From NCBI GenBank assembly GCA_004431415.1, contig QPMI01000136.1, positions 137,037 through 201,036 of the forward strand: 64,000 nucleotides of DNA, given 5' to 3'. Each line of letters opens with the position of its first letter. Positions within the stretch are counted from its first letter, which is position 1. The position numbers were made by a program, and so were the translations under genes. Positions 2,690 through 35,850 of this stretch are shown here, in pieces. This DNA is from Cyanophora paradoxa CCMP329 (lineage: Eukaryota > Plantae > Glaucophyta). Below the pieces are notes generated by a model. It had not been told where the DNA came from. It saw only the letters and a list, made by a program, of their open reading frames with translations, and searched no databases.

Positions 2690-2708
2690 CTATTTCGTAA
2701 ATATAAAG

Positions 2709-3755: not shown

Positions 3756-3777
3756 ACTTTTTGTAGGGACTTTATAG

Positions 3778-4800: not shown

Positions 4801-4820
4801 TTATCTACATGTAATATAGA

Positions 4821-5087: not shown

Positions 5088-5135
5088 AGCTATAGCTTGT
5101 CTGCAGCCTATTTTTTTCTCTCGCATTTCTATCAA

Positions 5136-5984: not shown

Positions 5985-6012
5985 GTGAAAGTTTTATCTT
6001 CTGTTTTCTAAA

Positions 6013-8752: not shown

Positions 8753-10560
8753 AGCGCCGCCCCGGCCGCCCAGGCGGCGCGGGGCCGCCCGGGCGGCCGC
8801 CAGCGCCGCCCCACGCCGCCGCCCGCCGCCCCAGCGGCCCCGCGCCGCGCCTGGGCGGCCGCCCCGCGCCGCCCCGCGCTGCGCGGGCGGCCGCCAGCGC
8901 CGCCCGCGCCGCCCCGCGCCGCCTCACGCCGCCCCGCGCCGCCCCGCGCCGCCCCGCGCCGCCCCGCGACGCGCGGACGACCGCCAGCGCCGCCCCACGC
9001 CGCCCCACGCCGCCCCGCGCCGCCCCGCGCCGCCCCGCGCTGCGCGGGCGGCCGCCAGCGCCGCCCCGCGCCGCCCCGCGCCGCCCCGCGCCGCCCCGCG
9101 CTGCGCGGGCGGCCGCCAGCGCCGCCCCACGCCGCCCCGCGCCGCCCCGCGCCGCCCCGCGACGCGCGGACGACCGCCAGCGCCGCCCCGCGCCGCCCCA
9201 CGCCGCCCCGCGCCGCCCCGCGCCGCCTCACGCCGCCCCGCGCCGCCCGGGCCACTGCTGGTGTCGCCCCGCGCCGCCCGGGCGGCCACCGGTGCCGCCC
9301 CGCGCCGCCCCGCGCCGCCTCACGCCGCCCCGCGCCGCCCCGCGCCGCCTCACGCCGCCCCGCGCCGCCCGGGCCACTGCTGGTGTCGCCCCGCGCCGCC
9401 CGGGCGGCCACCGGTGCCGCCCCGCGCCGCCCCGCGCCGCCTCACGCCGCCCCGCGCCGCCTCACGCCGCCCCGCGCCGCCCCGCGCCGCCTCACGCCGC
9501 CCCGCGCCGCCTCACGCCGCCCCGCGCCGCCCCGCGCCGCCTCACGCCGCCCCGCGCCGCCCGGGCCACTGCTGGTGTCGCCCCGCGCCGCCCGGGCGGC
9601 CACCGGTGCCGCCCCGCGCCGCCCCGCGCCGCCCCGCGCTGCGCGGGCGGCCGCCAGCGCCGCCCCGCGCCGCCCCGCGCCGCCTCACGCCGCCCCGCGC
9701 CGCCCGGGCCACTGCTGGTGTCGCCCCGCGCCGCCCGGGCGGCCACCGGTGCCGCCCGCGCCGCCCCGCGCCGCCTCACGCCGCCCCGCGCCGCCTCACG
9801 CCGCCCCGCGCCGCCCCGCGCCGCCTCACGCCGCCCCGCGCCGCCTCACGCCGCCCCGCGCCGCCCCGCGCCGCCTCACGCCGCCCCGCGCCGCCCGGGC
9901 CACTGCTGGTGTCGCCCCGCGCCGCCCGGGCGGCCACCGGTGCCGCCCCGCGCCGCCCCGCGCCGCCCCGCGCTGCGCGGGCGGCCGCCAGCGCCGCCCC
10001 GCGCCGCCCCGCGCCGCCTCACGCCGCCCCGCGCCGCCCGGGCCACTGCTGGTGTCGCCCCGCGCCGCCCGGGCGGCCACCGGTGCCGCCCCGCGCCGCC
10101 CCGCGCCGCCTCACGCCGCCCCGCGCCGCCCCGCGCCGTCCCGCGCCGCCCCGCGCCGCCCCGCGACGCGCGGACGACCGCCAGCGCCGCCCCGCGCCGC
10201 CCACGCCGCCCCGCGCCGCCCCGCGCCCGGGCGGCCGCCAGCGCCGCCCCACGCCGCCGCCCGCCGCCCCAGCGGCCCCGCGCCGCGCCTGGGCGGCCGC
10301 CCCGCGCCGCCCCGCGCTGCGCGGGCGGCCGCCAGCGCCGCCCCACGCCGCCCCGCGCCGCCCCGCGCCGCCCCGCGCTGCGCGGGCGGCCGCCAGCGCC
10401 GCCCCGCGCCGCCCCGCGCCGCCTCACGCCGCCCCGCGCCGCCCGGGCCACTGCTGGTGTCGCCCCGCGCCGCCCGGGCGGCCACCGGTGCCGCCCCGCG
10501 CCGCCCCGCGCCGCCCGGGCCGCCGACAGCGCCGCCCCCACGCCGCCGCCGTGCCGTCCC
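8753..10560. repeat. Composite GC-rich minisatellite built on cgccgccccg with higher-order blocks (gggccactgctggtgtcg...ggccaccggt)
   Basis: Directly visible; it gives stop-free PAPPRAA ORFs in all frames. Confidence 0.95.
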
Positions 10561-11169
10561 CACGCCTCAACGCCCTGCCGAGGCGGCATCAGTGCGATGC
10601 GCGCATGTACGCGGCGGCATCAGGTCGATGCCGGTGTGTGCGCTGCTCGCTGCTATGCGCCCGATGTCGTTGATTATATCTAGTCGCTATGAACGAGACG
10701 AACGAGGGCGAGCGCCGCCCGATGCCGCCCCGCCCGCGTCGCTTCTTGCGCTCCGCGCCGCTCCTGGCCGCCACGGCTGCTTGGATCTTGTCCACGGACT
10801 TTTTGTAGGTGCTACTAGAGGCGCCCGACGCAACCTTCCTGTGGCGCGGGGGTCAGCGCGGTGCGGGAACGCCGGGAAGGCGAAAAACGAGGGCCATGGC
10901 CGCTGCAGCCGACCTTCAGTAGCGAACACGCCATCTTGGTAGCCGCTGAGTGCCGCCAGGCACGTATGCGCACCAGAACGGAGTACTACGGTAGCACGGG
11001 CCGCGCCCGCGCGCGGCGCGGCCGGCCGACGCTCCTGGCCGAAGCTCCGGCAGCCGGCGATCTTCCTGGGCCAGCCCCCTCGCCTGCGGCGCGCCCGCCC
11101 CGGGGCCCGCCCCGTCGGGCCCCGGCCCCCGCCGGAGCGCGCCGCCGGGCGGCGGGGCGCCAGGCCGCC

Positions 11170-11561
11170 GTTCGCCCCGCCGGGCGGCCAAAGGGCGCCA
11201 GGGGAAAGAGCGGATCTGCCGTTCGAGGGGAGCGCCGCCGCCCCGGTCAGGGTGCGCCAGCTGAAGGAGCGAGGGCGCAGCGAGAGAGGCGGGTACGCTT
11301 TTCTTCGAGGGGGCGGGCGGGTACGCGCGCGCGCACCGCCTCTCAGCGGCGGAGCGCGCGGGGGCCTGCAAAGGGATGGCGGTGCCTGCGGGAGGAGACG
11401 GCATCAGGGGGCGCCCGGGGGGGGTAGGGAAAGAAGCGCGCGGGGCGGGGCGCGCCTGTGCGGCGCGAGGGGTCGTTCTTCCGCGCGGCCTTGGTGGCGA
11501 ACCGCTTCCCCGGCGCCTTGCCGCCGGTTGAAGACTTGGGCGTGTGCTTGACGCGGGCCAT
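11170..11561 (-). pseudogene. Divergent histone H3-like gene with a degraded histone fold
   Basis: MARVKHTPKSSTGGKAPGKRFATKAARK aligns with the H3 tail. Predicted introns 11455-11386 (GC-AG) and 11336-11261 (GT-AG) give RRWRTLTGAAAL and, after a frameshift, ADPLFPLAPFGR (compare HRYRPGTVAL...TELLIRKLPFQR). TATA-like cataaata about 105 bp upstream. Confidence 0.7.
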
Positions 11562-13091
11562 CGCCGCCCGCCACCCCGCGCGGCCTCGCCAGGGCTCGCT
11601 CGGGCTCGCTCGGGCACGGCGGCTCGCCGCGGCAGGCGCTGCTCGCGCCCCCGAGCGCGCCTGTATTTATGCATCAGCGACGAGGGGGAAAGGGGGGGCC
11701 GGGGGCGGGCAAAGGAAAGGCTCACCGGGGAGCAGGGGCCGGGTGGCGAAACGAGAGGGTGGGGGTACACGTCCGCTGGGGCCGGGGGCGGGGCGGGCAC
11801 AGGCGCGCGCGGAGACGCCGCGGCTCGCTCCCGCCCTCCGCTTCGAAGATTCCCGGTGGGGCCCGCCCGCGCCGCCGGCGCCGAATCGAACGGGGCCTGG
11901 CCGGCAGGTGAGGAAAACAAAAGATACTAGTACCGCCCCAGCGCCCCACCAACGAACCGCCGGGCAGCTGGACCACGACCAGTCGACGGGGCCCGCCGAG
12001 CCGGTTCTGAAAAAAAGAACGGGTCGGAATTGCGTTGGTGGTGTGGGGGGTACAGGAACACCGCCGGCCCGACCTTCGAGATAGGACCTCGTTGAAGTTG
12101 ATTTCCACCAATTCGACCCCGGGGAATCCAACGGTGGGGTCGGCGGGGTCTGGATCGGGGGTACTGGAGCGCCAGCTGGGGGGCGGAGATCCGACTAGGG
12201 CGGAAACTGGCCAAAGCCGGTTCAGTCCAAGCTTAGGGGTGCAGGCAATCGATCGGGCGGGGTTTGAGCGCACCCCGCCGCCCCCACGCCGCGCGGAAGG
12301 CGTTCATCGACCCGGAAGGCGTCGGGCGGCGCCTCCGAGGCGTCCAGGGCAATCTGAGAGCGGTTTGGGAGCGTTCGGGCGCGTGCGGCAGGCAGATGCG
12401 AGGGATGGGGCGAATGGACCATCGGCCGTCATGCGACGGCCGGAGCGCGCCGGGCGGAGCGATCCGGTCGCCATCAGGGCCTTTACGTTTGTGGCTCGCA
12501 GCGCAGAGGTGGAGCCCTCGAGCGCCGAGGGCGCCGACCGAGTGCCGCGCACAGCCATCGCCGAGCCGAGCCTGCGCGAGGACGCGTTGGAAATCGATGG
12601 AGGAGACCCTGAAAGGCGAGCTCTTGTGCACTGGACAAGGCCCGCCGACGCGAGATGCTAAGACTGATGCTTCTCCGGAGGGGTATCGTGCTGTGTGGAG
12701 GATAGGATGGACCGAACCTCGCGTTGGCCGCCTCCTCGCCGCGGCCCGGCACCGATGGACCGCAGCTGGACGCCGTCGCCCCGCGTGGGTGAGGCAACGC
12801 CCGGCAACTCTCCACGCTCTCTGTAGGCGTGTGGTCGTTCGAGCGGCGCGGGGAGTGTGCGCAGCCGCATCAGCTCCGCACGCCCTCGCAGGCTCCGCCG
12901 TCGCGCCCGGCGGCCGTGTGCCTGCGTTACTGGGACTCGCCGCGGCGCGCATCGGCGCGCGCTGGCTCGCCGCCTCCGCGGCTGCAGCAGCAGCCAGCCG
13001 CCTGACGCTGCTGCTGCTGCTGCCGCGCCCGCCGGCCGCCGCGCCGCGTGCCACACGCCGGCGTGGGTGCCGAGTTGCGCGCCCCCCGCAG

Positions 13092-13859
13092 AACTACCTG
13101 AAGGATACGTGGAGCTACAGCGTCTTCGCCCCCGTCCTCGGGCACGGCCTCGTCTCGGCAGAGGACGAGCTGTGGAAGCGGCAGCGGCAGATCATCGCGC
13201 GCTCCTTCGATCCCGCCCATCTCAGGAGCATGCTCACCATCCGCTCCGACGTGCGCGCTGCCCAGCGGGCGCCACGCGGGCGCCGCCTCCGCCGCCGCCG
13301 CCGCCTGACGCGCCCGCCGCGCCGCGCCGCAGACGGCCGTGACGCTGCTCAACCGCTGGCGCCCAGCGCCGGGCGCCACGTCGAAGTTCGACGTGTCGCG
13401 CGACTTCCGCATGCTGACCCTGGACGTCATCTGCCGCGTGCGCGCCCCGCGCGCCCTCCCGCCCCGCCCCGTCCCGTCCCGCGCGCCCGGCGCGGCCGCC
13501 CTCACGCCCGCCCGCAGGCTTCCTTCGGCATGTCCTTCGAGGATGACAGCGCGATCCCCCGCCTCTACCTCTCCATGATGCACGAGATGAACACCCGCAT
13601 CTTCTACCCCTTCCGCCCCGTGCGCCGTACCCTTCCCCTCCGCCCCGCCCCTCCGACCTGTCCTGACGGCCCGGCCCACCCGCCCGCCCGCCCGCCCGCC
13701 CGCCCGCCCGCCCGCCCGCCCGCCCCCAGTACCTGCCCATCCCAGTACCAGTACCTGTACCTGCCAGTTCAAGAAGAACGAGGCGGAGCTGAACCGCATC
13801 GTCCGAAAGCTCATCGAGGACCGCCGGAAGGACATCCAGGATCACCCCGACCGTCGGAC
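13092..13859 (+). pseudogene. Internal fragment of a cytochrome P450 gene (four exons)
   Basis: LGHGLVSAEDELWKRQRQIIARSF (C-helix WxxxR) and FRMLTLDVICR|ASFG. Introns 13251-13332, 13438-13517 and 13620-13729 with GTGCGC donors. Exon 4 is frameshifted by cagtac/ctgtac duplications. No N-terminus, I-helix or haem motif. Confidence 0.85.
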
Positions 13860-13892
13860 GTGCGTCGAACCCCCCCCCCTCTGTCTCCTGCT

Positions 13893-14035: not shown

Positions 14036-15313
14036 AATATTAATGCGCGATCGCGAGGGCCGTGGCAGGGCCCGGGGAACGGGCGCCCGGTGCGGTGTTC
14101 CCGAACTTCGGAATATACGAGGGTCCTAGATATCGATCTAGATCTGATCTGACAGCACCCAGGTGGTCGCCGGCCCTTACGCGTGCATCTACTGGCCCAG
14201 TGGTAGTAGTAGTTATTGTGCCAGGCGCCGGCCTGCTCCTGAGTTCTAGAGAGTTCATTCCACCAGCACTCCCAAACGCATTTGCCGCAGTGCGCTCTCT
14301 CAAATCGTGAAACTGGGGGAAGACAAAACGCGAAGTACGTATACGAAGTACGGGGCCCGATGTTGGACGAGCCGTTCCATGTTAAATATAATATAAGCGC
14401 CTCTTTCTCCTGCGGAGAGCATGTCATATACACGCGCACGTGGCTGCGGCGGCGCGGGCGGCGCACACACACCATGCAGCCTAGGCCTGTCGGTGGTAGT
14501 CGTAGATCTCTTCAAGCGTGAACATGCTAAAGTCCTTTTTCGACCACTTGCGCGCGGCCTGCCAGGTGGTCAGGGGCGGCGGTGGGCGAGGGCGGGGGAG
14601 CGGCGAGCCATAATGCGGCTCGCGAGGCTCGGCGTTATCTCCTTGCCGTCCGAGCTGAGGATCGATTCGCCTTCGGCGACGGGCCCCTGGGGCGGGGCGG
14701 GCGCCACAAAGGTGCGAGCCGGCGCCAGGATCTGCGGGCCCGGGGACGGCGAGGCCGGTCCCCGCTCGGGGGGCGCGCTGCGCCCCGGTCAGACAGGCGT
14801 GCGCGCTCGAGGGGCGCAGGCGGACCTCTCTCGCGGCGGGGCGTCCGAACTCGGGCTGCTGAGCGGTTTCCCGACGCGGCGGGGCGGCGGGGGCGGGCGG
14901 CGCACCGGGCGGCGGATGCCCTGGCCGACTCTTTGAGCTCCGCGCTGGGCGCGGCCTCGACCGCCTCGCCCTCTTCTTTGCCCTCCTCCGCCCCCGCCTC
15001 CGCATCCAGGCTGCGGCGGGATCAGGAAATCCTGCCGGACGTCCCCGCCGCCGCGCCCAACGCACTACCAGCCGGCGTCGAGGCCGATCCTGGTGGCGGC
15101 CTCCCGGAGGAGCGGAAGGAGGGCCTCCTTCTTCGGATGACTCCCGATGCCGCCTCGGCGGCGGCAAGCTGCAAGGGCCTCCCGGAAGGCGGCGGAGGGC
15201 CGCCGGAGCTCGAGGCTGGTGCCACGGGCCCACGACCGTCGGACCGACCGGTCACGGACTCACGGTGCACCGTGCCACGGTGCACTCGACTCGCGAGTCG
15301 CGAGTCTCGCGAG

Positions 15314-15833
15314 TAGGGCTGTCGCGGTACGGCGCGGTAGCGGTAGACTGGTCCTACCGACCGGCCCGGTAGACTTGCCCGGTCTACCGTCATACAAGCC
15401 CGGTAGCCATACAAATTCGCCCGTTGGGGGGTAGCCGGGCGCGCCCTGGGCACCCGGCACGCTACCGTAGTACGCGGTAGCGCTAGCGCTAGCGCGCGCG
15501 CGCGCGCGTGGCGCGCGTGGCACGCCGCGTGCGCATGCGCATGCGCATGTGGCCTGACTCAGTGAGCCTGCAGCGCTAGCGACGAATTCAAAGAAGCGCC
15601 TCTCAATGTCAACTGTCCGGCTGAACCAGGTACACCCTTCTGTAGATGCGCAAAGTAGCGTGTAAACAGTTTAGGCGCGTAGCGCCTTGGAGCTTGACGA
15701 ATTTTAGCTTGATTTTGCGTCAGTTTTCGCGTACTATGCGTGCCAGCCGTGACCTACCGGGCGTACCCGGTCGGTACGGGTCAGAGAGGGCTACCGACCG
15801 GGTAGAGGGGGGGGGTCTACCGTGACAGCCCTA
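15314..15833. mobile_element. 520-bp non-autonomous hAT-type MITE
   Basis: TIRs TAGGGCTGTCGCGGTA / TACCGTGACAGCCCTA (1 mismatch). 8-bp TSD CTCGCGAG at 15306-15313 and 15834-15841. Subterminal cggtag/ctaccg motifs. Confidence 0.9.
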
Positions 15834-17215
15834 CTCGCGAGTCGCGAGACTCGCGACTCGCGACTCACAGAGTCAGTGCACGTGACAGTCAGTTTCACTG
15901 TGTCGGCGCCGGCACTGTCGGGCCGGCGCGGCGGCGCCTGCCGGCGCCAGTGCAGCACTGCCGCAGTGCCAGCCTGTGCCAGTGATGGCATTAATAATAC
16001 TCCCCAAAACGCCGACCTTAACATTAATAGTTAAGGTCTTTAAATTATTATGATTTTTTTTTTTAAGATCTACGGTGGGCGTGCCCACTCGTAGTACACA
16101 ACGAGGATACAAGTCACGGTATCGGGAATCACAGGGATTCGAAGTACAACGTAGCGGAAACAGCAGGAACCGAACCCGGGAATCCGGGAGGTCGTAGCAC
16201 GACCTTATACCACTGCGCTGATAAGGTCTTATTATTATAGTATTATAATAAGGACCTCCGGGGGTACGCAAAATTTGCGGTGGCGCGACGATTACGGCAG
16301 CGCGACGGGCCAGGCTTCCCACCCGTGGGTGCCTGATAACGCCGCGTGTCAAGCTGCTCGGAAAGTCGCGCGCCAGCTCCACCCGACCCCCGTAGACCGA
16401 CAACGCTAGCCAACCCAGCCGGGCGCGAGCCGACAGCCGACGCGGGCACATCACCGTCCAGCATCACTGCCGAAGCCGACAGCCCGCCCCCGGAGCGACG
16501 TGGAGCCCCGCCGACCTCGCCATGACGCCGACGCTTTTTGAATCTCAAGGACCTTGCCCGCGCCCCGCGCGGGACATACGGATAGCGCGCTGCCACTCTA
16601 GATCTTCCGTATAACTTCGCAGTCCTAGAGTGGCCAGGTCGCGAGCGACCGCCTCGACTTCGCCCGAGCTCCCGCCATCGCCGCCCGGCCACCCACACGC
16701 CGCCCGCCGCATAGCCGATGCCCGATGACCGCCAGCTCTCTAAGATGACGCACCCGCCGTCGACGTCACGCGCCGCCGCCACTAGTACTGTCCCTCGAAT
16801 GCCGCCGTCATGCTGCAGGCGCCGCGCGCGCCGCCCCATCCTCACAGAACGTGCTCGCGCGCCTGCAGATCTCGACCTGCATCTTGACCTCTCTCCCCCG
16901 CCTCGAGCTCGCCGCGCGACGGGGCCGTCGGCGCCGTCCGATGTACAACTACGGCGGGGTGCGCCCACGCCCAACTCCCTAGCGCCCCGCGCCGGTCCCT
17001 CCCCCGCCCAGAGCCCAGGCCCCGCGGGCCCACGCCCCCGCCCCCTCTCCCCCGGCCTGGGCCCAAAGGGCGCCCACCCGGACTCCTCCTCCCCGAGGTC
17101 GGTACAGAGACGTGTACGCTCGGTCCCCCCCCCAGAGCCAGACGAGGCTCGCCCGGACCCGGCCTCCAAGCCGGCCCCTGCCGCCGGCGCCAGCGCCCCG
17201 CCCCCGCCCCCGGCC

Positions 17216-18015: not shown

Positions 18016-19710
18016 ATGTTCAGCGTGGTCAAGGACGCCTACGAGGTCGCCGAGTTCGACGGCCTGTGGGGCCGCGACCGCCTGATCCTGCTGCGCTCCG
18101 ACGCCGGCCTCGTCGTGCCCGTCGCCGAGCTGCGCCGCATCCTCATCTACGCCCCCGATGAGCCGCCGGAGGACCCCGACCGGGCGCTGGCGGACCTGTA
18201 TCGCGTCCCCTGCAGGCCCGTCGCGAGCGAGGAGACGATCCTGCTGCTCGAGATGCTCGGCGTGATCCGCCGCGGGGCGCACCGGCCCGACGGCAGCCCG
18301 CCGCGCGTCGTCTCCCTCCGCCACGCCGAGCAGATCGTATGCGAGCGGTGGGACGAGGACCCCGGGGTGAGCGCGCGGAAGCGGTGCGTCGCCCGCCACA
18401 TCCTCGCCGCGATCGAGCGCCGCCGGCTCGAGTCGTTCGAGCGCGTCGAGCTCCGCGTCCTCCGCCTCGGGTCCTCGAGCGCCGCCCGCGTCTATGCCCT
18501 CCGCTGCAAGCGCATCGAGGTCCCCGTGATCATGAGCGGCGCCCCCGGCCCCGCCCCGCCCCGCGCTCACCAGGGTTCGAGGACGTCGAGTGGTACGCGC
18601 CCATCGCGTCCCTCGCGCAGGCCGCCGGGCGGCGTACGGCTCCTCGCTTGACGTCCCCTCGCTGCGGGCCGAGATCAGGCGCAGGCATCCCGACCTCGGG
18701 GCCGACTCGCCTTTTCGCTTCAAGGCGCGGACCGACGTCGTCGGGCGGGCCCGCTTCGCCCTAGAGGGGGGTACGGCGCTGCCCCGGGGGTACGGCGGGG
18801 AGGCCCCGGGCTCAGGCGCGGCGAGGGGCGAGGCCCAGTTGGTGCCTAGCTAGAGGGGACGGAGGGGCCGAAGGGAAGGCTGAAGCGCGGGCGGGAGGGC
18901 GGCGCGCACCCCCTTGGGGATCTTGTAGTCCCCGAGCGTGTCCTCGCTCGCGGTCTCAGGCGCGCGCCCGCCTCCCGCCTCCCAAGCCGGCCGCGGGCGC
19001 CGGCTGATCGTGACCGCCCGCGGCCGGGGGGTCGTGGCCACTGGCCAGACGCTGACGCTGTACGCCGGGCTGAACGCCGAGGTCGAGGGCGAGGCGGCGC
19101 GCGGGGCGGCGTGCAAGTGGGGCTTCATCAGCCTCGCCGGCGCCGAGAGGATCCTCCAGGGCCTGCCGCGCTTCGGGGACGAGCTCCTCGTGCCGTTCCG
19201 CCGCCAGCGCCTCGCCCTCGAGGGCGCCGACGCCGCCGAGATCGAGGCCGCCGCGCCGCTGCCCCTCGCCCCCGCCCGCCGCATCGCCATCTTCACCAAG
19301 CGCGAGTGGCTCACGGTGAGCCGAGGGGCGCGCGGGGCCGGGCGGGGCGGGGGAAGGAGTGTCGGGAGCGCTGACCGCGGGCGAAGGCGGCAGGACCAGC
19401 ACATCGCCAACTGCCTCTCGATCGTGCTGGCGCGGGCCGGGCCAGCGCGGCGCCCCGCGTCCGGGCCCTGTACCCCATGACGCTCGACATTGCGACGAGC
19501 CTCCTAGGCCTCCGCCGCCACGCCCGCGCCAGCTCCGAGAAGCGCCGGCGCCGCGCCCTGGCATGGGGGCGGCGGAAGAGGGGCGCGTCATCCTCTGCGC
19601 ATGCCCCGTCTCGGGCGGGCTCGTGCGGCGGGGGTCGGAGCGAACCTGGAGCGCGGGGGGCCACTGGACGCTCCTCGCGATCTCCGGCGACCTGCGTTAT
19701 CTAGATCTCC
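18016..19710 (+). pseudogene. 5' part of a mobile-element gene ending in a Ulp1/C48-like cysteine protease domain
   Basis: ATG 18016 with host-like codon use. Splicing intron 19316-19393 gives KREWLT|DQHIANCL (compare WLNDEVINFY). Then VILCACPVSGG...GGHWTLLAISGDLRYLD, with catalytic His at 19662 and Asp at 19704. The Q-x-C region is missing where an insertion begins. Confidence 0.6.
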
Positions 19711-19915
19711 GCGAAGTATCTAATAGTCAAGGCGCAGAGACTTGCTGGAGAGTTGCTCTGAAGCAGTCTCCAGAGATTCTCCAAGCGGATATTAGCGGAT
19801 ATCAGCTGGAGACTTCATCCCAACAAAGTCTCTGTCAAGTCTCCCGGCGCCCCAAAAATGCGTTAATCTCCAGCGCTAGCTAGTCTCAGTTAATTCTCCA
19901 GCTGGTCTCCCGGGA
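19710..19915. mobile_element. Lower-GC insertion with repeated ctggaga/tctcc motifs, probably a DNA transposon end fragment
   Basis: Composition shift and motif repeats interrupting the protease coding sequence. Confidence 0.4.
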
Positions 19916-20019
19916 CCCCCCTCTGCACTAGTGGGCCCGGCGGAGCCTGCTCGAGTCGGCGCTCGTCGGCGACGTCCACCTCTTCTGCAAGGCCGACGTC
20001 GCCGACCCGGAGCGCGTGA

Positions 20020-21670
20020 CGCTCCCGCCGCCGGCCGCCGCGGGCGAGGCCGCCGCCGCCGCCGCCGCCGCCGCCGAGGGAGGCCCCGCCGGAGGGCGGA
20101 CGGGGGCCGCTGGTCATCTCCTCCTCCTCCTCCTCCTCGTCCTCGTCGTCCGCCCCGTCCGACGAGGCCGACGAGGCCGAAGGCGGGGCCGCGGACGGCG
20201 GCGCCGACGGCGAGGCAGAGGGCCTGGAGCCGGAGGCGGCGCCGGAGGCGAGCGAGGGCGAGGGCGAGGGCGAGTACGCGCTGCCGGAGGGCGAGTGGAG
20301 CCGCGAGCTGCGGGCGCAGATGAAGCTCTTCGAGGAGTGGAGGACGCGGGCGATCAACCCGGACCGCGCGGGGGCGGCCGTCGAGCGGAGCACGGCCCTG
20401 ACGAACGACGTCGGTGAGCGGGCGCGGCGGCGGCGGCGGAGATGCATATGGGCGGGGCGGGGGACGGAGGAAAGGGGGCTCACGAGGTCGACGCAGGGAC
20501 GGTGGGGCGCTTCCTGGGGTACCTGGCGGCGAGGGAGGAGGTCAGGCCGCTCTCGTTCGACGTCTTCTCGCGGGGGGGCCTCGTCGATCTGTGGATGCGG
20601 TTCCTGACGTTTCTCAAGGAGGAGAGGAAGCTCACCGCGGGGACGCTGAGCGGGTACACCAGCTCGATCATCATGGCCGCCGCCTTTGCGCACTCGAGGA
20701 CGGGCGCCGCGACGGGGAGCGAGGGGCCGCACGCCCGCGCCCTGAAGAACGTCAAGGTCAGAGGCGCTCGCGCGCGCGAGAGAGAGGGAGGAGGAGGGGC
20801 GGACGAGGGTCGGGCCGGGGGGCACGAACCCGACACCCGCCCGCCCGCAGGCGCAGCTGGAAAAGGAAAAGCGGGAGGAGCGCAAGTGGCGGCCGCGGGG
20901 CGAGAACTGGGTCGAGTAAGAGCAGGTCCTGTGCGCGCGGCTCGCCGCCCTCGAGCAGTACGAGGGCGCGAGGACGGACTACGAGCGGGCCCAGGCCCTC
21001 CGCGAGGCCTGCCTCCTCGGCTTCCTCGCCGTCACGCCGGCCCGCGTCGGGATCATCCGCCGCCTGCGCGTGGGGGTGAGCCTGCGGCGCGACGCGGGGG
21101 CCGGGCGTGGTGCATCGTCATCGACTCGATGCGGGCGGACGACGGGACGGGGGAGATGGCTCTCGCGAGCAAGACGGCCCGCTTCCACGGGGCCCTCTCG
21201 ATCCCCGTCGCCGCCGTCCTGCAGGAGCCGCTCACCCTCTCCGTGGAGCGCTTCCGCCGCCTCCTCATTCCCGACGGCGCCCCCGACCAGCAGTGGCTCT
21301 TCATTAGCTCCGCCGGCGGCGTCCTCAGCGAGAGCGGCTACGGCGCCTGGGTCAAGCGGGCGCGTCGCGGGGGCGCGCCGCGGGGGGCGGGGTACGGGGT
21401 ACGCCGAGGCTCACCCGCTGCGGCGGCATGTGATGGAGCGGTGGACGGGCAAGCCGGTCTCTGCTGCGCGTGCGGGAGCGGGCCGCCGCGCACCAGATCG
21501 AGGGGGACACGGCGGCGGCGGTGATCGAGGGGACGGCCCGCCTCCTGCAGCACAGCGTCCAGACGGCGACGACGCACTACGACTACGGCGCCCGCGCCCG
21601 CCAGGCCGCCGCCGCCGTCGCGTTCTTCGAGACGGCCGCCCAGCAGCACGCCGCCCGCCGCGCGGCTGAG
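20020..21670 (+). pseudogene. Intron-containing tyrosine recombinase (Crypton / PLV-type YR), inactivated
   Basis: Introns 20414-20496 and 20757-20850, plus one near 21360-21420. SAM-like FLTFLKEERKLTAGTLSGY. Catalytic order R (TPARVG, 21043), K (SKTARFHG, 21171), LLR (21467), H (LLQHS, 21551), Y (THYDY, 21578). In-frame TAA at 20917-20919 and frameshifts near 21105 and 21460. Confidence 0.85.
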
Positions 21671-21753
21671 GGCGCCGACCGCGAGCGCCTCCCCGCCCCG
21701 CCCCGCCGGCCCCGGCCGCCGCCCCTCCGAATCCGCGCCGGCCTCGGCCGCCT

Positions 21754-21785
<32 letters not shown>

Positions 21786-22079
21786 CGCCGCCGCCGCCCG
21801 GGGCGCCGACGGGCCGGACGAGGGGGTGCCGGTCGGTCGCGCAGCCCGCCGTCGAGCCCGAGCCGGCACCCCGTCCCCTCCTTCCTCCTCCTCGTCCACC
21901 GCGACGCCGCCGCGCCGCGCGGCGCGGAGGACGGCGCCCGTGAGGCCTGCGGAGGAGGATGAGGAGAGCGACGGCGGGAGCGGGCGGGGCCGCTCGGGGG
22001 GCGCGAGCTCGTACTCGGAGGACGGCGAGGAATCCGCGGGGAGCGGGGCCTCGAGCGGCGGCGAAGAGGGGCCGGAGCA

Positions 22080-22770
22080 GAAGCGGAGGCGCTTCCCGTG
22101 GCAGAAGAAGAACCCGTTCACGAGGCCCGGGATGCAGGTCGAGCGCGACCTCGCGATCGCCGAGGGGAGGTACTGCGCGCCGTGCGTCAAGGTGAGGCCC
22201 CGCCCGCCGCCCGCCCCGCCCCCTCTCCCGCGGACCGACCCGGCAGCGCCCGCACGAGCAGATCTTCCGCACCGCGGCGGGGTACCAGCGCCACCGGGCG
22301 ACGTCCAAGGCGCACGGCCAAGGGGCCGGGGCGGGGCGGGGCGCGCCGCGCGGCGCGGGCGGGCGGGGAGGAGGAAGAGGAGGAGGAGGGGAGGGGGAGG
22401 GGAGGAGCAGGTCGGCGGCGAGCCCCCCGCGGCCCGCGGGCCGCTCTGGCACCTGCGCTGGACGTCGGCGTCGCCCTTTCGAGCGGGCCAGGTCGTGGCG
22501 GCGCTCACCTCGCACGCGGCGGACCCCCTGCCGCGCCCCGTCTTTGCCCGCCTCGTCGCGACGGTGCCGCTCCCCTCGGGCGAGACGGAGAACCGCTTCG
22601 TCGTGCTCCGGCGCTTCGGGGCCCTGTACGCGCCGTCGACCGAGGGCGGGCCCGGCGACTGGGGGCGGCCCCGCGCGCTCGTACCGGTGCAGAGCGAGTC
22701 GAGGAACGGCGCCGTCGACGTGCTGACGAAAAGCGAGCGGATCTTCGACCTCCTCGGCCTGGGCTCCTCC
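22080..22770 (+). pseudogene. C-terminal extension of the YR gene: C2H2 (matrin/JAZ-like) zinc finger plus a small beta-rich (SH3/Tudor-like?) domain
   Basis: Splicing intron 22192-22246 gives YCAPCVK|RPHEQIFRTAAGYQRHRATSKAH, followed by FRAGQVVAAL...PVFARLVATV...RFVVLRRF. Confidence 0.55.
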
Positions 22771-23003
22771 TCGTCGGCGCCGCCGCCACCGGCGCCGCCG
22801 CCGGCCCCGCGGGCCCGGCCCCGCGACGAGGAGCGCGAGCGCGGGCCCCCGCGGCGCGGCCGCCCGCCGAAGCGCGGGCCCGCTCCGCGTAGCCCCCTGC
22901 GGCCGCCCTCGCCTCCCACCAGCTGCAGAGATCGAGCGCGCGCGGGCTGGGCGCGGCCAGTCGATCCTGGAGCGCGCGGGCTCGCAGCTCCCGGGCGGCG
23001 ACG

Positions 23004-23363
23004 CAGTCGATCCTGGAGCGCGCGGGCTCGCAGCACGCCGTGTACCTGCTCCAGAGCGAAAAGGCGGGCGTGACCTACACCGGCTCCACCAGCTGCCTGG
23101 CGCGCCGGCTCAAGGAGCACCAAACGGGGGCGATCAAGGGCGCGTACACGGCCGGGAGGGGCCCCTGGCGACTCGTGGCTGCGGCGTGGGGCTTTGCAGA
23201 CGCCGCCGGCGCGCGCTCGTTCGAGATGCGCGTCAAGAAGCGCTCCGGCGGCGCGAAGCGCAAGCTCCACGCCATGCAGGCCATGGCGAAGGAGGGTGCG
23301 AGCGCGGGCCTGGCGTTTGGGCTTGCCGAGGGCGTCGTGGGCGGCTACGGCGAGGACGGGTGA
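23004..23363 (+). CDS. GIY-YIG endonuclease domain (SLX1-like)
   Basis: AVYLLQS...TYTGSTSCLARRLKEHQTG...GAYT...GPWRLV...GF...ARSFE. It has no ATG of its own and is preceded by a 46-bp duplication, so it is probably a terminal domain of the upstream gene. Confidence 0.85.
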   Translation, partial: QSILERAGSQHAVYLLQSEKAGVTYTGSTSCLARRLKEHQTGAIKGAYTAGRGPWRLVAAAWGFADAAGARSFEMRVKKRSGGAKRKLHAMQAMAKEGASAGLAFGLAEGVVGGYGEDG

Positions 23364-26523: not shown

Positions 26524-26570
26524 ACCTCGCTCGGCACCAACCCGCCATTCGCAAACCGGACCGACCCCCG

Positions 26571-27015
26571 ATGGCCTCCGCTTCCTCCGCGTCGACCGCC
26601 GCGGCCGCCGCGGCGGCCGCCGCCAAGGTCGACGCGCCGCGCGTCGCGGCTGCGGCCGACGCCGACGTCGCGCCGCCGCAGCTGCCCCTCGACGTGATGG
26701 GGATGTATCGATGATCGCCAGCGCGCGCCGCTCTGCCGCGCGCGTACCTCGCGCCGCTCTGCCGCGCGACGCACGCCATCGTGAGGGAGGGGATGGACAA
26801 GGAGTGGAGGGACCTCTGCTGCAGCTGAGAGCAGTTGAGTGTCCGGGTTCCGGAAATTAAAGCTGCCCCAATTAATGCAAGGGCACCGCCCGCGACGTCT
26901 TCTTTGCCAACGTGGAGATGCGCTGCAAGACGTGCCTCTATAACAACCTGACCAACCGCGATCGCATACGGCTGCCGCGGTCCTTCATTTTAGAGAAGAT
27001 CGAGGGGCCGCGTCT
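26571..27015 (+). pseudogene. F-box-like gene fragment
   Basis: ATG 26571, then PQLPLDVMGMY*...RAYLAPLCRATHAIVREGMDKEWRDLC, matching the F-box LPxDV...CR...W pattern; internal stops present. Confidence 0.5.
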
Positions 27016-27182
27016 CTAGCTATATAGATCTTGGACCCGCCCACCGGATGGCCCGTCTGCGCCAGGCACGCCCACTGCGATGTGGAAGCGCGCAGTGCGC
27101 TGACTCAGTGATCTCCATCTCCCCCGAGAGCGCCAAGGCGCAGGAGCAGTTCAAGCTCTAGATCTAGATCTACCCAGCAGTA

Positions 27183-29817
27183 GTAGAATGGGGTAGGAAC
27201 TGACATGTACACTTCCCTGGCATCATTCTGACAATATTTATATTGTCAGAATGATGTCAGCCGCTGAGCCGGTCACATGATTCAGAGTCTGGTGCCGGTT
27301 CTCATCGTTCTAGTTCAGGCTCTGATTCTGACTCGTCCGGCGCTCCTTCTTCGGGCGGTGCTGACAACCTCGTCTCTTCGCGTGACATCGATTCTGTCCT
27401 CCGGAATCCTGCGGAGTTTGCCGTTCGTGGGAATGTCCCGTTGGGGACCCCTGGTGATCGACCGCCTCCTGCGCCGTCCCCTCCTGCTCTGGCCCCTGTA
27501 GTGACCCTTGGGCATGTTCCTATTCCTGCTCTCGCTGCCCCTCTCGACGCTCCTTTTCCCCCATTCCCTGCGGTCCCGATCCCTGTGCTCCTTGGCCCGC
27601 TGGCCCCGCCTCTACCTCCTCCCTCCTTACAACTTGCTGTCACGGGGCCTCTTCACTTGCCTGTTCCCCCGGCAGGTCCCTGGTCATCTTGCAGCTCCGT
27701 ACCCCTTCTTACCTCTTCCCCTTGCTCCTCCACTTCCGCCCCCGCGTGGCCCTCTTTCTGACGTCCTCCTGGTTCAGCCCCCTCTTCAGCCTATCCTTCT
27801 TGCCCCCGCTTCTGCAACTGTGACGCCGGGCGGCACTATCTTTTTGCATGCCCCTCCCGCCACTACGTATATACGTCTCCGGTCTCTTTGCGTCTGCATC
27901 CACTTTCCCGGGTCCGCTTGCAGGCCCCCTCGCCTCCAGAGCTCGCCATCACTTCGGCCTCCCTCGCCTCCGCTCTCGATTCTCCATAACCTTCGAATAG
28001 CCGCCTTCTCTCTCCTCCTCCGCCCTCTCTCCCCCCCTCGAGCTCCGGGTCCTCGGCCTCTGCCCCGCGTCCGAGTGTTGGCGAGCTCGAGACTGTCCTC
28101 TTTTCGGTCTCCCCGTCATTCCGGCTCCCTGCTCCCCCTTCGGCCCCTCGGGTCCCATCTGCGGGTCCTATCCCGCTTCCTGGCGCTCGTGAGATTCGCC
28201 GCCGGCACCCTCGTCGGGCCCTTGCGCCCTCGAGCTCGTCTCTCTCTGCGCCGCCCATGACCCCCGTGTCATCTGATCCGGCGCCACCCGACCTTTCTCC
28301 TGCTTCGCTGCCCTCTCTTCGGCGCCGGCAGCGATCCCCGTCACCTGCTCGCGGCCCTTCCCCTGCCGCCGACCCTTCCTCGGCTCCCTCCTCGCCTCTT
28401 CCGTCTCGTAGGCCTCCGCCGCGTTCCCGTCGGCGGATCTCTCGATCGACCCTGGACGTCGACTCTCCGCCTGCCACTGTCTGCGGGGTACCTCCGCCGC
28501 CGTGTTCGGCGCCGGCTGTCATGATCAGTACTTTGCTCGGTAGCTCCCCCGTCGTGGCTCCTCGGGGGCCTCTTCGTCGACGTCGTTCGCTGGGTTCCGG
28601 CTCCGGGTCAGATTTCTCGCCGGGCTTACCTTCTCCTGGCTCTGCTCCTGCTGGGCCCTCAGCTCCGGGACTGGCTTCCCCGATCTCCTCCCGGACTCGT
28701 GGTCTTACCCGTCGCCGGCTTGCCGAGCCTGCGTCTCCTTCTACTTCCCTCCGGCGGTTTGCCGGGCCGGACCCTCCGGCCTTTGTTCTTGATACCGGAC
28801 TGCCGCCTTTGCCTTCATCTTCTGCTTCGCTGGTTGTATCCCGCCGGCGCCGGCGTACTTCGTCTTATAGTTTAGTTCGGTCTGGTTCGGATTCTGATCG
28901 TAGTGTTGATGCTAGAGTTAGCTTCAATACTAGCTATAGTCTTTGTGCTCGACCTGTTGTTCGCCGTCGTTTGCAGTTCAACTCAGTGACTGCCCGCCTC
29001 GACCCCGGCCGGCTTTAAATTTAGTGATTCCTTTGACTGTCCTTTTGCCTGCTCTTGATCTGCCTGCTCCGCCTCCTGTGTCCTCCTCGACCTCGTGCCG
29101 TAGCTCTGCCCTTTCACATCGTTCTGCTTCGCCTCCGCCTCCACGTCGTCTTGTTGTTCCTCTTACTTGTCTGCTTCCTGTTATTTATCCTAGCTTTCTC
29201 AATTTTGTCCTCCGCTTCTTAGTGATGTAATTAATATTCCTTCCGATATTGATGGTATCTCTAGCTCTGGCTCTTCTTCGTGTCAGTCTTCCTCTGTCCC
29301 TAGATCTGGTCGATTTATCGTCTCTTCTCGATCTGTTTCGAGCTCTGTGTCTTTTCTTTTTTATTGTCGATTTTGGCTCTTTGTCTTATCTTTCTTCGTG
29401 TTCTTGTCTTAGTTATTTTGCTTTTTTGTCTTTATGCCTCCTGGGCAGCCCCCGCAGTGCTGGTGTCTAGAGACTGTGGCCGGTAATTCACCGAAAAAAA
29501 AAGCCGGTCTGACAATTTCCTGACATATAGTTACTCTGGCACTACTCGGACTAGAGTACCCGGTGACCAGAGCAGTAGTATTTAGACAGTATCCTCATTC
29601 AGATTGATACTTTAATTTTGTGACATCAACACGACATTACATCTGACAATATCCTGACACGGTTCTGACACTTATAATTAGGATAATGTCCGGATAATGT
29701 CAATTGCGCATGCAGGCAAAGTGTCAGGATAATGATGTCAGGGCTGACAATATTTATAATGTCAGAATGATGTCCGGGTATGTAGCCACGGTAGTGTCAT
29801 TTCCTACCCCATTCTAC
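27183..29817. mobile_element. Non-autonomous TIR DNA transposon with TA target duplication (Tc1/mariner-like), carrying a nested insertion
   Basis: TIR GTAGAATGGGGTAGGAA(c/a)TGACA at 27183 and its reverse complement ending at 29817. TA at 27181-27182 and 29818-29819. Palindromic subterminal ctgacaatatttata(t/a)tgtcag at both ends. Confidence 0.85.
27275..29501 (+). mobile_element. 5'-truncated non-LTR retro-insertion with poly(A) tail
   Basis: TSD AGCCGGTC at 27267-27274 and 29502-29509; A-run 29494-29502. Pyrimidine-rich + strand with low-complexity Ser/Pro ORFs; no RT motifs seen. Confidence 0.8.
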
Positions 29818-29907
29818 TAGTGCAGAGGGCCCGGGAATATAAATCGGCACCATCCCGGAGTCCCGCACCTCGCCACCGACGAACGGGGCCTCACGACCCG
29901 CGCGGCG

Positions 29908-30270
29908 GTGCTGAGGGAGATTCGGCGCCGCAAGGCCCTTCCCGCGGGGCCCGGCCTCGTCTCGCTCTCGGCCGTCGTGGCCAAGTACCGCCTAGGCCTC
30001 CACCCGCGCCGCTTCGCGCGCCACCAGCCGCGCGGGGCCCTCGCCGCCGCCGCCTACAACGCGGACACGCTGGAGGAGCGCCGCTGGCTGGTCGAGGTGG
30101 TGGGGATCGCCGATCCGGAGGGGAGGGTGTCGCGCCTGAAGTATGAGGCGGAGCCTCGCCGCATCCGCAAGCGGCGCCGCGCAGAGCTCGAGCGCGAGGC
30201 CGCTAGCGCTGCCCGGACCGCTGCCGAGGGGCAGACCGCGGCCGAGGCCGCCGGGCCGAGGGCACTATAG
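29908..30270 (+). CDS. Hypothetical 120-aa protein or gene fragment
   Basis: TATA-like aatataaat at 29836, host-like codon use, non-ATG start; no domain recognised. Confidence 0.3.
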   Translation: MLREIRRRKALPAGPGLVSLSAVVAKYRLGLHPRRFARHQPRGALAAAAYNADTLEERRWLVEVVGIADPEGRVSRLKYEAEPRRIRKRRRAELEREAASAARTAAEGQTAAEAAGPRAL

Positions 30271-30600
30271 CTAGTAAAAAGGGGGTCGCCGGAGCCTGTC
30301 TCAACCTGATTGAAATCAGGCGGAGGCAGGCTGAAAGCAGGCTGAGTCGTCAGCCTGACTGTAGCCTGATTAGGAACTCCAGCCAGCACCTAGCCGCGCC
30401 TGATTCTAATATTTTTAATATCCATCAGGCTGAGGCAGGCTGAGTCAACGGACTAGGGGCTATACTAGTATAGTCGACGTCAGGCTGAATTTAATCAGGC
30501 TGAGCGCGCCAGCACACATAGCTTATAGAAGCATCGGAACTCGCACTCTCAATATGATAAGCACTATTACTAGTACTACGTATACGGTACTGTTCTACAT
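30271..30600. mobile_element. Lower-GC insertion with many caggctga/tcagcctg motifs (probable transposon subterminal region)
   Basis: The motif is repeated in both orientations; no clear TIR pair found. Confidence 0.4.
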
Positions 30601-30749
30601 CTCAACATGCAGACGGAATTAAAAAGCGGCCCGGTGCTCCTTGCAGGCCGCGGCGGATCAAGGTGCTCTCATGGTATTGCGGATCCGGGCCCGTGCTCCT
30701 TGCAGGCCGCGGCGCCGGACGCCGCGCTCGGCGTGTGCCACGGTGGATG

Positions 30750-33378
30750 TGCTGTGCCAAGTCGCGCACGGGGAGCCGCCGCCGCCAGGCCGAGACGCTC
30801 GTCCTAGGAGATAATGTCAGAATAAGGTCAGAGTGGGCGACGGTGGCGCGGTGGGTCTCGTACCGCGACGTGCGGGACGGGGCGCCCGACGCCGCCGCGC
30901 TCCTCAGCACCGTCGAGTCGGTCCGGCGCTTCGACGGGGTCTTCCCCGTCGTGATCCTCGACGAGGGGGCCAAGGCGATCGTGACGGCCGTCCTCTCGGA
31001 GACGCTGGCGCCGGAGGCGCGCCAGATCTAGAACCAGGCCCTGGCGCGCCTGGGGCGCCTCCTGCGCGAGGCCTCCATCCTCCTCGTCTCCGACGCCGAC
31101 CTCTGCCAGCACGACGTCGACTACTACCTCGCCCTGCGCCACCCGGCGCCGGCCGCGCCCGGCGCCGCCCGCGTCGTCTCCTACACCCTGCGCCCCGCCC
31201 CGCGGGGCCCCGCCGCGCGCCGCGAGGCGCTCGCGTACCCCCTGGGGATGGCGGGGACATCGTGGCGGCGCTCCTCCTCGGCGGCCGCCGCGTCGCCGTC
31301 GCCAGCTCGGACCGCCGCACCCTCTTCCGCACGATGGGCGGCCACCCTGTACGTGTACGCCGACGCGCGCGCCGAGGAGCGGGCGCGGGCGCTGGACAAG
31401 GCGCACGTGTGCCGCGAGGTCGACGTCTTCGTCTTCAACTACGCCCTCCACCAGGGCGCCGACTACACCGACCCCGAGCGCCCGTACGACGACCTCGTGC
31501 TCCTCGAGACGGGCCGCGGGGAGCGTCGTGCAGCTCTGGCAGCTTGGCGGCCGCGTCCGCTGCATCCGCAGCGACCGCATCCTCGTCTGCGCCGGCGGCG
31601 TCGGCGGCTCCGAGGGGGAGGAGGAGGAGGGGGAGGAGGACGAGGCGCCGGAGACGGACCCGGAGGCGATCCTGGCCGAGCAGGTGCGGGCCCTGGAAGA
31701 GGCCCACGGGTCGACGGGGACCCTGCGCCACCGCGCGATCCAGGTGGCGCTGCGGGCGCAGTCGCACAAGCTGGCCGTGCTGCGCGCCACGCGCGCGGAC
31801 CCGCTGCTCCCCGGCTCCCCGCCGGCTCGCCGCCGGCTCCCCGGCCTCGGCGTCCTCCTGCCGGGCGGCGCGCCGCCCGAGCGGACGGAGGGGGTGAAGG
31901 AGGAGGCCAAGGCGGCGCAGGCGCGGGCCTTTGAGATCGAGGTCGTGCTGCCGCACGCCGCCGCGCCGCCCCTGCCGGAGGGCCGCCGGAACCGCGTGGG
32001 CGAGGCCCTGCGGGGCGCCGGGGCGCCACCCCGGGCTCCGTCTCCGACGCCAAGCGCCTCGGCTACGGCCTCCACGCCGTCGCGCACGCGTACCGCCTGC
32101 GCGAGGAGGAGGTCGGGCCCCCCGAGCTCCGCCTCGCCCTGCGCTCCAACGATCGGGCCGCCTTTCTCGCGCACGTGAGCACGGCGCACCGGATGCTGGG
32201 GACACGCGGCGGGCGCAACATCCTCCCCAGCGTCGCCGACGAGGCGCACTCGCGGCGGAGCGCCGCCCTCCTCCTCGGCGCCGCCGGCTGGGCGCCGCCC
32301 GTGACGCCGGCCGCCATCCTCTCGCCCTCGCGCCCCTGGACGAGGCAGCCGTGCGGCGCGTCGCCGGCGAGGCGCGCGCGGGCGGCTCCTCGCGGAGCGC
32401 CGGCGCGCCCGCTCCTGGAGGCGGACGAGCTGCTGGCGATGGAGCCGGCGGCGCGCCCCGAGGGGCGCGTGGCCGCCCTCGCCCGCGCGGCCGGCGCCCC
32501 GCCCTCTGGAAGCTCCTCCGCGCCTCGGCCGCCGCCCTGGGGGCCCGCGCGCGCGAGTTCAAGAGCTCCGGCGGGGGTCTCCAAGGCCGGGCCGGGGCCC
32601 TGGACTCGCTGGGCCTGCGGGACGATCGGGCCGAGGCGGCGGCCGCCGGCGGGGCCGACTCGTCGCCCCTCTGGGCGACGGACGCCGAGGCGGCGGCGGC
32701 CTCGGGGGCCTGCGCTGGGGCCGCGCCCAGGCCCGCGAGGCGGCCGACCTCGCCAACCTGTGCGCCCTCGCCGCCCGCTCCTGCCGCCTCGCGTGGGGGG
32801 ACAGCCCGGAGCGGACGGGATCCTGGCGCTGCACCCCGAGGCGTACCTGGGCGAGCGGGCCCGCCGCCGCGGGGGCGGCGCCCCCGGCGACGAGGCCGAG
32901 GCCGCGGACGAGCTCGCCGGGGCCGTCGCGGGGCTCGCGCCGGCCGAGCTCGCCGCCATCGTGCGCGGCGGGTTCGCCGCCGACGCCCGCCTCGACGCCC
33001 TTGCCGCCCGCCTCGCGGCCGAGACGCACAAGGCGCTGGAGGCCCGGGCGCGGCGCGAGGCGGGCCGGGGCGGGCCGACCCCCGCGTCTCCCCTGGTTCC
33101 CGGTTCGTCGCATGGTTCCTGCGCCGCCTGCACGGGGCCCGCTGGGACCCGAGCCGCTGCGTCCCGTCGCCGAGCGCCTGCCGGGCCCCAACGGCGTCGA
33201 GGTGCAGCGGGCGGGGCCCAAGTCGGGGAGGGACCTGTGCGTCGGCTGGGTCGAGGAGCACAGGCGGCCGGCGCTGCACATGAAGAACGCGCGCGTCATG
33301 ACGCGCGGCGAGCGCCTCCGCGGCCTCGCCGTCCCCCTCGCCCTGTTTGCCGAGATGGGGATCGGCGATCAGCCGTAG
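30750..33378 (+). pseudogene. Replication origin-binding protein (herpes UL9 / NCLDV OBP-like SF2 helicase), 5'-truncated and disrupted
   Basis: In order: WVSYRDV, LLSTVESVRRF, Walker B VVILDE (30953-30964), motif III ILLVSDADL, motif V DVFVFNYALHQGADY...YD, motif VI QLGGRVR. In-frame TAG at 31029 and several frameshifts; Walker A not found. Confidence 0.75.
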
Positions 33379-35464: not shown

Positions 35465-35850
35465 GGGCGAGCTGGCCGGATCCCGCCACCCCGCGCGATA
35501 CCAGCCGCTCGAGGTTCGCCCCCGGCCCGCGCGCCACGCCCCGACCTCCAAGTCGGGCGCGGGCGCGTTCAGAGGGGGGGTACGGGGCGAGCTGGCCGGA
35601 TCCCGCCACCCCGCGCGATACCAGCCGCTCGAGGTTCGCCCCCGGCCCGCGCGCCCCGGCCCGTGTTCTAAATCGGGCGCGGGCGCGTTCAGAGGGGGGG
35701 TACGGGGCGAGCTGGCCGGATCCCGCCACCCCGCGCGATACCAGCCGCTCGAGGTTCGCCCCCGGCCCGCGCGCCACGCCCCGAGTTCTAAATCGGGCGC
35801 GGGCGCGTTCAGCGGGGGGGTACGGGGCGAGCTGGCCGGATCCCGCCACC
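35465..35850. repeat. 120-bp tandem repeat, about 3.2 near-identical copies
   Basis: gggcgagctggccggatcccgccacc recurs at 35465, 35585, 35705 and 35825. Confidence 0.95.

Follow-up and report, generated by a model that had tools for sequence, protein, structure and literature searches.

A defective copy of a probable Crypton-like tyrosine recombinase transposon family with a fused Ulp1-like protease in Cyanophora paradoxa

The window analysed here is a stretch of 64,000 nucleotides from the glaucophyte Cyanophora paradoxa CCMP329 (contig QPMI01000136.1, positions 137,037 to 201,036), in which positions 18016-23363 hold a broken gene that joins a Ulp1-like protease to a tyrosine recombinase (YR). 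The results make it likely that the window carries an inactivated member of a Crypton-like family of YR DNA transposons in C. paradoxa, in which the GIY-YIG endonuclease is encoded separately in subfamily A. The locus almost certainly corresponds to the C. paradoxa gene model tig00000540_g1937 (P0002), with six identical segments. The queries were single exon pieces, the natural stop-free open reading frame (ORF) 20499-21356 and then the relatives found. When 1.84 billion proteins were searched by phmmer with ORF 20499-21356, seven matched, six of them C. paradoxa EukProt gene models, and further searches added P0013-P0017. By gene-model names, nine related models lie on eight other contigs, so that ten loci on nine contigs are reached with the window copy included, a dispersed multicopy pattern of young and decayed copies like that of Cryptons. 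The copies formed four subfamilies, with YR identities ranging from 44 to 93%:

Subfamily A: the window copy, P0001, P0013 and P0014; YR about 93% identical or better
Subfamily B: P0003, P0015, P0016 and P0017; YR 53-59% identical to A
Subfamily C: P0005; YR 54% identical to A
Subfamily D: P0004; YR 44% identical to A

Both the YR tree and the protease tree recovered subfamilies A and B, with branch lengths near zero inside each, and near-identical young copies were found on separate contigs with decayed copies beside them. The catalytic residues of the protease and the YR were kept across subfamilies, those of the YR (Arg, Lys, Arg, His, Tyr) in all four. P0005 stops after the YR and P0004 begins at the protease, and thus both models are partial. 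In a further model, P0006 (tig00000448_g882), a YR fragment was joined to the end of an EF-hand protein, which is probably an insertion adjoining a host gene. Outside Cyanophora, relatives were confined to short marine metagenome contigs. One of these, L001 (ENA ERZ17293805, 53-2106), has 60% GC and an intron-bearing gene whose YR is 30-35% identical. This YR shares the arginine, lysine, xxLR and histidine motifs and is immediately preceded by an N-terminal domain; the gene has no protease. L001 comes from a marine eukaryote, and several near-identical variants occur in ENA metagenomes (P0007-P0009, P0018 and P0019). Two metagenome scans and tblastn against phages gave no match, nor did viral-contig scans with the YR, the beta domain, the protease and one downstream-gene query.

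The complete models predict one spliced ORF of about 1250-1400 amino acids, with the order: two Bro-N-like domains, Ulp1/CE protease, acidic linker, YR, C2H2 finger, unassigned beta domain and AT-hook-like tail. On the window, the corresponding features are as follows:

18016-19315, plus strand: N-terminal region with two tandem Bro-N/Dachshund-homology-like putative DNA-binding domains, colinear with residues 1-309 of P0014
18016-18525, 18582-18739 and 19049-19315, plus strand: exons of the N-terminal region, with decayed splice sites and one frameshift near 18630
19298-19697, plus strand: N-terminal half of the Ulp1-like (clan CE, C48) cysteine protease, matching P0014 up to residue 403
19662-19664, plus strand: catalytic His of the protease, in a module with an intron at 19316-19393 and frameshifts at about 19440 and 19563
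19698-19940, no strand assigned: 243 bp of foreign DNA with about 49% GC along most of the segment, in place of P0014 residues 404-505
19941-20274, plus strand: protease end and acidic/Ser-rich linker, running into the YR exon without an intron gap relative to the sisters, with two 1-nt frameshifts
20275-21660, plus strand: tyrosine recombinase, SAM-like core-binding and catalytic domains, with introns at 20414-20496 and 20757-20850
About 21043 (Arg), 21171 (Lys), 21551 (His) and 21578 (Tyr), plus strand: catalytic positions of the YR
About 21357-21430, plus strand: probable decayed intron of the YR
22111-22324, plus strand: C2H2 zinc finger, jaz/KIN17/matrin-like, split by an intron at 22192-22261
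22435-22770, plus strand: conserved beta domain of about 110 amino acids, family unassigned, 60-63% identical between subfamilies A and B
22858-22892, plus strand: AT-hook-like basic motif and likely natural stop of the polyprotein (TAG at 22890-22892)
22958-23034, plus strand: tandem duplication with a 46-bp period and 31 identical nt where the GIY-YIG ORF begins, with no ATG upstream
23001-23363, plus strand: GIY-YIG endonuclease (SLX1/UPF0213-like), probably encoded by its own co-oriented ORF, whose start codon is lost here

The modules thus form a colinear chain on the plus strand, as the first-pass annotation of this DNA had described, and the coding pieces are interrupted by stops, frameshifts and short GC-rich introns. 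The GC content at third codon positions (GC3) was 0.89-1.0 in every coding piece versus 0.54 in the 19698-19940 insert. The shared intron style proposed in that annotation was borne out by four GT-AG introns of 70-94 nt (19316-19393, 20414-20496, 20757-20850 and 22192-22261), which agreed exon by exon with the sister model P0014, and both introns and GC3 are host-like. The protease, the linker and the first YR exon map on the window without an intron gap; therefore, this fusion is independent of splice prediction, and the protease, recognised by profile in sister copies, can be taken as a genuine part of the YR protein. Moreover, the stretch from the YR through the finger to the beta domain was uninterrupted in subfamilies B and D, which are 44-60% identical to A over it, in line with the earlier placing of the finger and the beta domain in the same protein. 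At the level of gene models, the core from the protease through the beta domain is thus one predicted protein, and the sister models support the earlier view of a YR transposon-like polyprotein.

Comparison with C48 and Phage_integrase had been proposed as a check of the modules. Among the exon pieces of the window, the GIY-YIG alone had a significant Pfam match, and one YR exon had a weak integrase SAM-like match (E 0.16). The protease and the YR thus had no significant match from the window pieces alone but did from the sister copies. The sister protease matched Pfam C48 at E 1e-4 (22.6 bits against a cut-off of 20.7), and the family profile searched against the PDB matched ChlaDUB2-type deubiquitinases (1e-6), XopD (0.013) and a Ulp domain. 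The catalytic set of P0014 consists of His392, Asp409, Gln441 and Cys447. The sister copies therefore share the His-Asp-Gln-Cys arrangement and the profile match of clan CE proteases (Ulp1/SENP, ChlaDUB2-type, XopD), whereas the window copy keeps the His alone. The YR of P0014 has Arg828, Lys869, Arg944, His978 and Tyr987; in its HxxR motif the first His is replaced. The sister YR matched the PHROG1 integrase (1e-4), Pfam Phage_integrase (4e-4), the XerC model (1.2e-4) and, weakly, Cre.

For the N-terminal region, whose tandem structure did not figure in the first-pass annotation, no sequence-level match was found and the structural matches fell short of E-value significance. The AlphaFold model of the sister N-terminal 300 or so amino acids (pLDDT 70) has two units with the same strand and helix order; Foldseek placed the Dachshund/Ski Dachshund-homology domain on top in the PDB (probability 0.93-0.99, E 0.1-0.3), and Bro-N proteins dominated the top 50 in BFVD (best E 4e-3). 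HHalign detected no sequence similarity of the two repeats to each other or to the N-terminal exon of L001. The predicted structures suggest that this region likely adopts a tandem Bro-N/Dachshund-like fold. The sister finger matched zf-C2H2_jaz (6e-4) and a KIN17-type model (2e-3), both below the cut-off. The beta domain had no match in Pfam, PHROG, NCBIfam, the PDB or viral contigs; it may have a BAH/SH3-like look. The basic tail motif closing subfamilies A and B is one that we take to be AT-hook-like.

The window copy is dead, as had been proposed, and is more heavily damaged than the first-pass annotation recorded, which overlooked both its protease lesion and the deletion of the second YR arginine. 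Asp409, Gln441 and Cys447 (P0014 numbering) are lost because residues 404-505 have been swapped for the 243 bp of foreign DNA, of which no second copy was found in the window. In the YR, a nonsense TAA lies at 20917-20919, and about 26 nt are missing at 21465-21470, the second catalytic Arg among them. In addition, at least seven frameshifts relative to P0014 (the YR one at about 21105) and decayed splice sites were found. Assembly errors may account for some of the 1-nt indels but not for the large lesions.

Cryptons are few, phylogenetically poorly resolved and have been seen active once, and Ulp1-like proteases occur on many transposons with unsettled function. On the model of Crypton biology, an intact YR would recombine short sequences at the element ends, which in Cryptons carry 4-6-bp direct repeats, excise the element as a circle and integrate it at a matching short target, and the Bro-N, finger and AT-hook parts may bind the element ends or chromatin. 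More speculatively, the tethered protease might remove SUMO- or ubiquitin-like marks near the element, which could either counter silencing or keep host repair off the covalent YR-DNA intermediate, and the GIY-YIG could serve as an accessory or passenger nuclease. The repeats of C. paradoxa are methylated at CpG (bioRxiv 2025.04.15.648976), and silencing pressure therefore exists. In yeast, covalent Flp-DNA adducts attract local SUMO (bioRxiv 2020.06.08.140079); because of this, and because the nearest structures of the protease are isopeptidases, protection or turnover of the YR-DNA intermediate is an alternative to anti-silencing.

It is rather unlikely that the protease instead processes its own polyprotein at the low-complexity linkers, in the manner of a viral maturation protease, rather than acting as a SUMO/ubiquitin isopeptidase. 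Adenain-type proteases of clan CE do process viral precursors, and long acidic/Ser/Pro linkers separate the domains here, which would suit such a role. However, the closest solved structures are the deubiquitinases and deSUMOylases named above, and L001, with its N-terminal domain followed by the YR, has no protease, indicating that processing is not required in this YR lineage. The protease-free gene of L001 suggests, from sequence comparison, that the protease could be an optional add-on in this lineage. A protease fused to a recombinase with a covalent intermediate would offer a compact system for distinguishing anti-silencing, intermediate protection and self-processing. Moreover, the young, apparently intact copies are present in a culturable alga, where ends, target site and circles could be read from the public assembly.

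The GIY-YIG domain was the only module recognised from the window pieces themselves (Pfam 1.2e-10; in the PDB, UPF0213 3.6e-11 and SLX1 3e-4), and it corresponds to the SLX1/UPF0213 catalytic domain. The first-pass annotation had correctly noted that it lacks a start codon (no ATG in 22780-23060) and had appended it to the polyprotein, as a junction-resolving nuclease domain of the integrase, through a 34-nt intron at 22889-22922 or a frameshift. This intron was rejected as an in-frame join since it leads into the wrong frame, and no single GT-AG intron in the window frame, 22889-22922 included, links the tail to the GIY frame free of stops. P0014 agrees with the window as far as 22878, after which it reads the four codons preceding the window's TAG at 22890-22892; one extra G near 22878 in the sister puts this TAG in frame, and the P0014 model skips it by splicing at 22889. 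The models P0003, P0016 and P0017 stop three residues past the AT-hook-like basic motif, and the end of P0004 is at the corresponding position.

A single polyprotein that ends in the GIY-YIG and resolves recombination junctions with it is therefore unlikely, although several observations speak for it and thus against a separate gene. P0013 (1543 amino acids) and P0014 (1517 amino acids) are annotated as complete fusions, the GIY-YIG lies directly behind at all three subfamily A loci reaching that far, and from 22889 on the DNA has the look of a C-rich GT...CAG intron with in-frame acceptors in the sister frame, where introns of 42-99 nt from the 22889 donor could lead into the GIY frame. On the other hand, P0013, P0014 and the window have three different junctions; P0013 gets to the GIY-YIG by another route, with the AT-hook region off-frame, and P0014 splices out a TAG sitting where subfamilies B and D end. 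Furthermore, five stand-alone GIY-YIG models were found (P0010, P0011 and P0012, the last comprising three accessions, at 93%, 77% and 56% identity), a short leader common to the window, P0010 and P0011 is missing from both fused models, and the four subfamily B models and P0004 have no GIY-YIG. YRs also resolve their own Holliday junctions. The stop position, the divergent fused junctions and the stand-alone models indicate that the GIY-YIG is probably a separate gene, as judged from the gene models, and that its earlier inclusion in the polyprotein was probably wrong; with a separate downstream ORF favoured, the proposed junction-resolving domain is left unsupported.

It is unlikely that the YR gene is the integrase ("captain") of a larger cargo-carrying or virus-derived element, such as a Polinton-like virus (PLV) or giant-virus insertion, extending beyond 18-23.4 kb. 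Bro-N, YR, GIY-YIG and cysteine proteases all occur in PLVs and related viruses (PMC12721341, PMC12220804), PLVs and giant-virus insertions are present in C. paradoxa, and unassigned broken genes lie downstream at 24.9-38 kb. The window also opens with a PLV-type fibre cluster at 65-6846, a low-GC (36-48%) intronless set of fibre-like genes with a phage tail repeat and H-lectin at 65-2689 and C1q-domain proteins at 2709-3755 and 3778-4800. This cluster probably marks the edge of an endogenous PLV that continues beyond the window start, and it is consistent with a fibre reported for a C. paradoxa PLV in PMC12220804. The YR gene, however, has spliceosomal introns and a GC3 of about 0.97, in contrast to the low-GC intronless cluster at 1-7 kb, and was rejected as a part of that PLV because the composition differs and the two are 11 kb apart. 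Fragments resembling host genes lie between them, recognised by eye: a histone H3-like N-terminal tail at 11440-11561 (minus strand) and, at 13090-13860 (plus strand), several exons resembling a cytochrome P450 and cut by repetitive DNA. For both, Pfam gave no match with the short pieces searched. The flanks had no match to viral hallmarks, and no reverse transcriptase, capsid, ATPase or polymerase was detected in the flanking coding pieces tested, among which divergent capsid genes could escape Pfam and PHROG, and no relatives of the gene occur in the viral contigs or phages scanned.

Downstream, a broken GC3-rich gene at 29860-33375 (plus strand) had no match in Pfam, PHROG or the viral-contig scan, and near 30950-31110 it has, by eye, the look of a helicase/origin-binding motif. 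A degenerate F-box-like ORF (26570-27000) and a Cys-rich RING-like ORF (36900-37460) were also recognised by eye, without a Pfam match for the pieces tested. A 43-nt inverted repeat pair about 490 bp apart at 15287-15860 is a possible miniature inverted-repeat transposable element, and a 2.6-kb pyrimidine-skewed segment at 27177-29823, with 23-nt inverted ends 96% complementary, has the look of a non-autonomous transposon with terminal inverted repeats (TIRs). Tandem DNA comprises a GC-rich 10-bp satellite (8754-10566), an array of 3.2 copies of 120 bp (35465-35850) and about 40 copies of 347 bp (50113-64000); the last probably represent exon-intron units repeated within a long host gene on the minus strand that continues to about 39500.

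Several points weigh against the classification as a Crypton-like family. The YR profile matches are modest (E about 1e-4), the AlphaFold model of the YR is of low confidence (pLDDT 49) and uninformative, making Foldseek on it meaningless, every sister protein is a computational gene model, and P0001 and P0013 may be a single locus in overlapping contigs. In addition, we infer mobility solely from the pattern of copies. That the copies are instead a domesticated or expanded, immobile host gene family is highly improbable: introns, host codon usage and the precedent of Crypton domestication reported in PMC3212892 would be in keeping with it, but near-identical copies are dispersed beside pseudogenised copies and fragments, full catalytic sets are kept, and no conserved orthologue beyond Cyanophora was found among the 1.84 billion proteins.

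Among known elements, the family resembles Cryptons in having the YR as its sole integrase (less the second Arg in the window copy), and neither TIRs nor long terminal repeats bracket the gene at 15-27 kb, so that terminal repeats were rejected as element ends. A retroelement of the DIRS, Ngaro or PAT type was rejected because neither reverse transcriptase nor RNase H accompanied the YR in the full-length models or flanking pieces tested. The markers of the CryptonF, CryptonA and CryptonI subgroups were likewise missing, as no full-length model or piece had a Pfam match to GCR1_C (CryptonF) or to a DUF3504-type YR (CryptonA and CryptonI). CryptonS elements, a YR clade with a conserved C-terminal region and TATGG ends, were not among the sequences that the searches returned. 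In the literature searched, which excluded Repbase and most subscription papers, no description was found of the fused domain order, of a Crypton with Bro-N-like domains or of a Cyanophora YR transposon, and no paper linked Cryptons to a Cyanophora element. One possible reading, put forward tentatively, is that of an undescribed YR DNA transposon superfamily shared by glaucophytes and one or more unrelated marine eukaryotes (L001), derived from a PLV-like virus reduced to Bro-N, protease, YR and GIY-YIG, in which the protease may strip SUMO or ubiquitin from the element's own covalent intermediate.

PLVs with a YR (such as OmPLV and cryptophyte PLVs) carry YR, GIY-YIG, Bro-N and sometimes a cysteine protease together (PMC12721341, PMC12220804), modules shared with the Cyanophora family, and there the GIY-YIG is mostly a stand-alone gene. 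PLVs differ in having capsid, ATPase, replication genes and TIRs, with compact intronless genes and usually low GC, whereas no capsid, packaging ATPase, replication genes or TIRs were found around the Cyanophora gene, which has introns. The shared module set bears on the virus-to-transposon transition proposed for PLVs. CryptonF-1_cRei of Chlamydomonas, which uses a 5-bp target for recombination, is the sole Crypton type whose activity has been observed (PMC9977147); it is likewise an intron-containing YR transposon of an alga and the source of the mechanistic model used here, and it combines the YR with GCR1_C, protease, Bro-N and GIY-YIG not being described there. Among the closest known elements are those of oomycetes, of which CryptonF-2_PS and some CryptonS encode a C48/Ulp1 peptidase besides the YR (Kojima & Jurka 2011, PMC3212892). 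The pairing of YR and protease, part of what the first-pass annotation had proposed as new, is therefore already known; neither the fused architecture seen here nor this lineage of YR turned up in the literature searched. The oomycete elements are also YR-only DNA transposons without TIRs that carry a C48/Ulp1 peptidase. In CryptonS, the peptidase is an additional protein, and CryptonF has the GCR1_C domain, whereas in the Cyanophora family, which has no Pfam match to GCR1_C, the protease precedes the YR within a single ORF that also encodes tandem Bro-N-like domains, a C2H2 finger and the beta domain, and the host is a glaucophyte.

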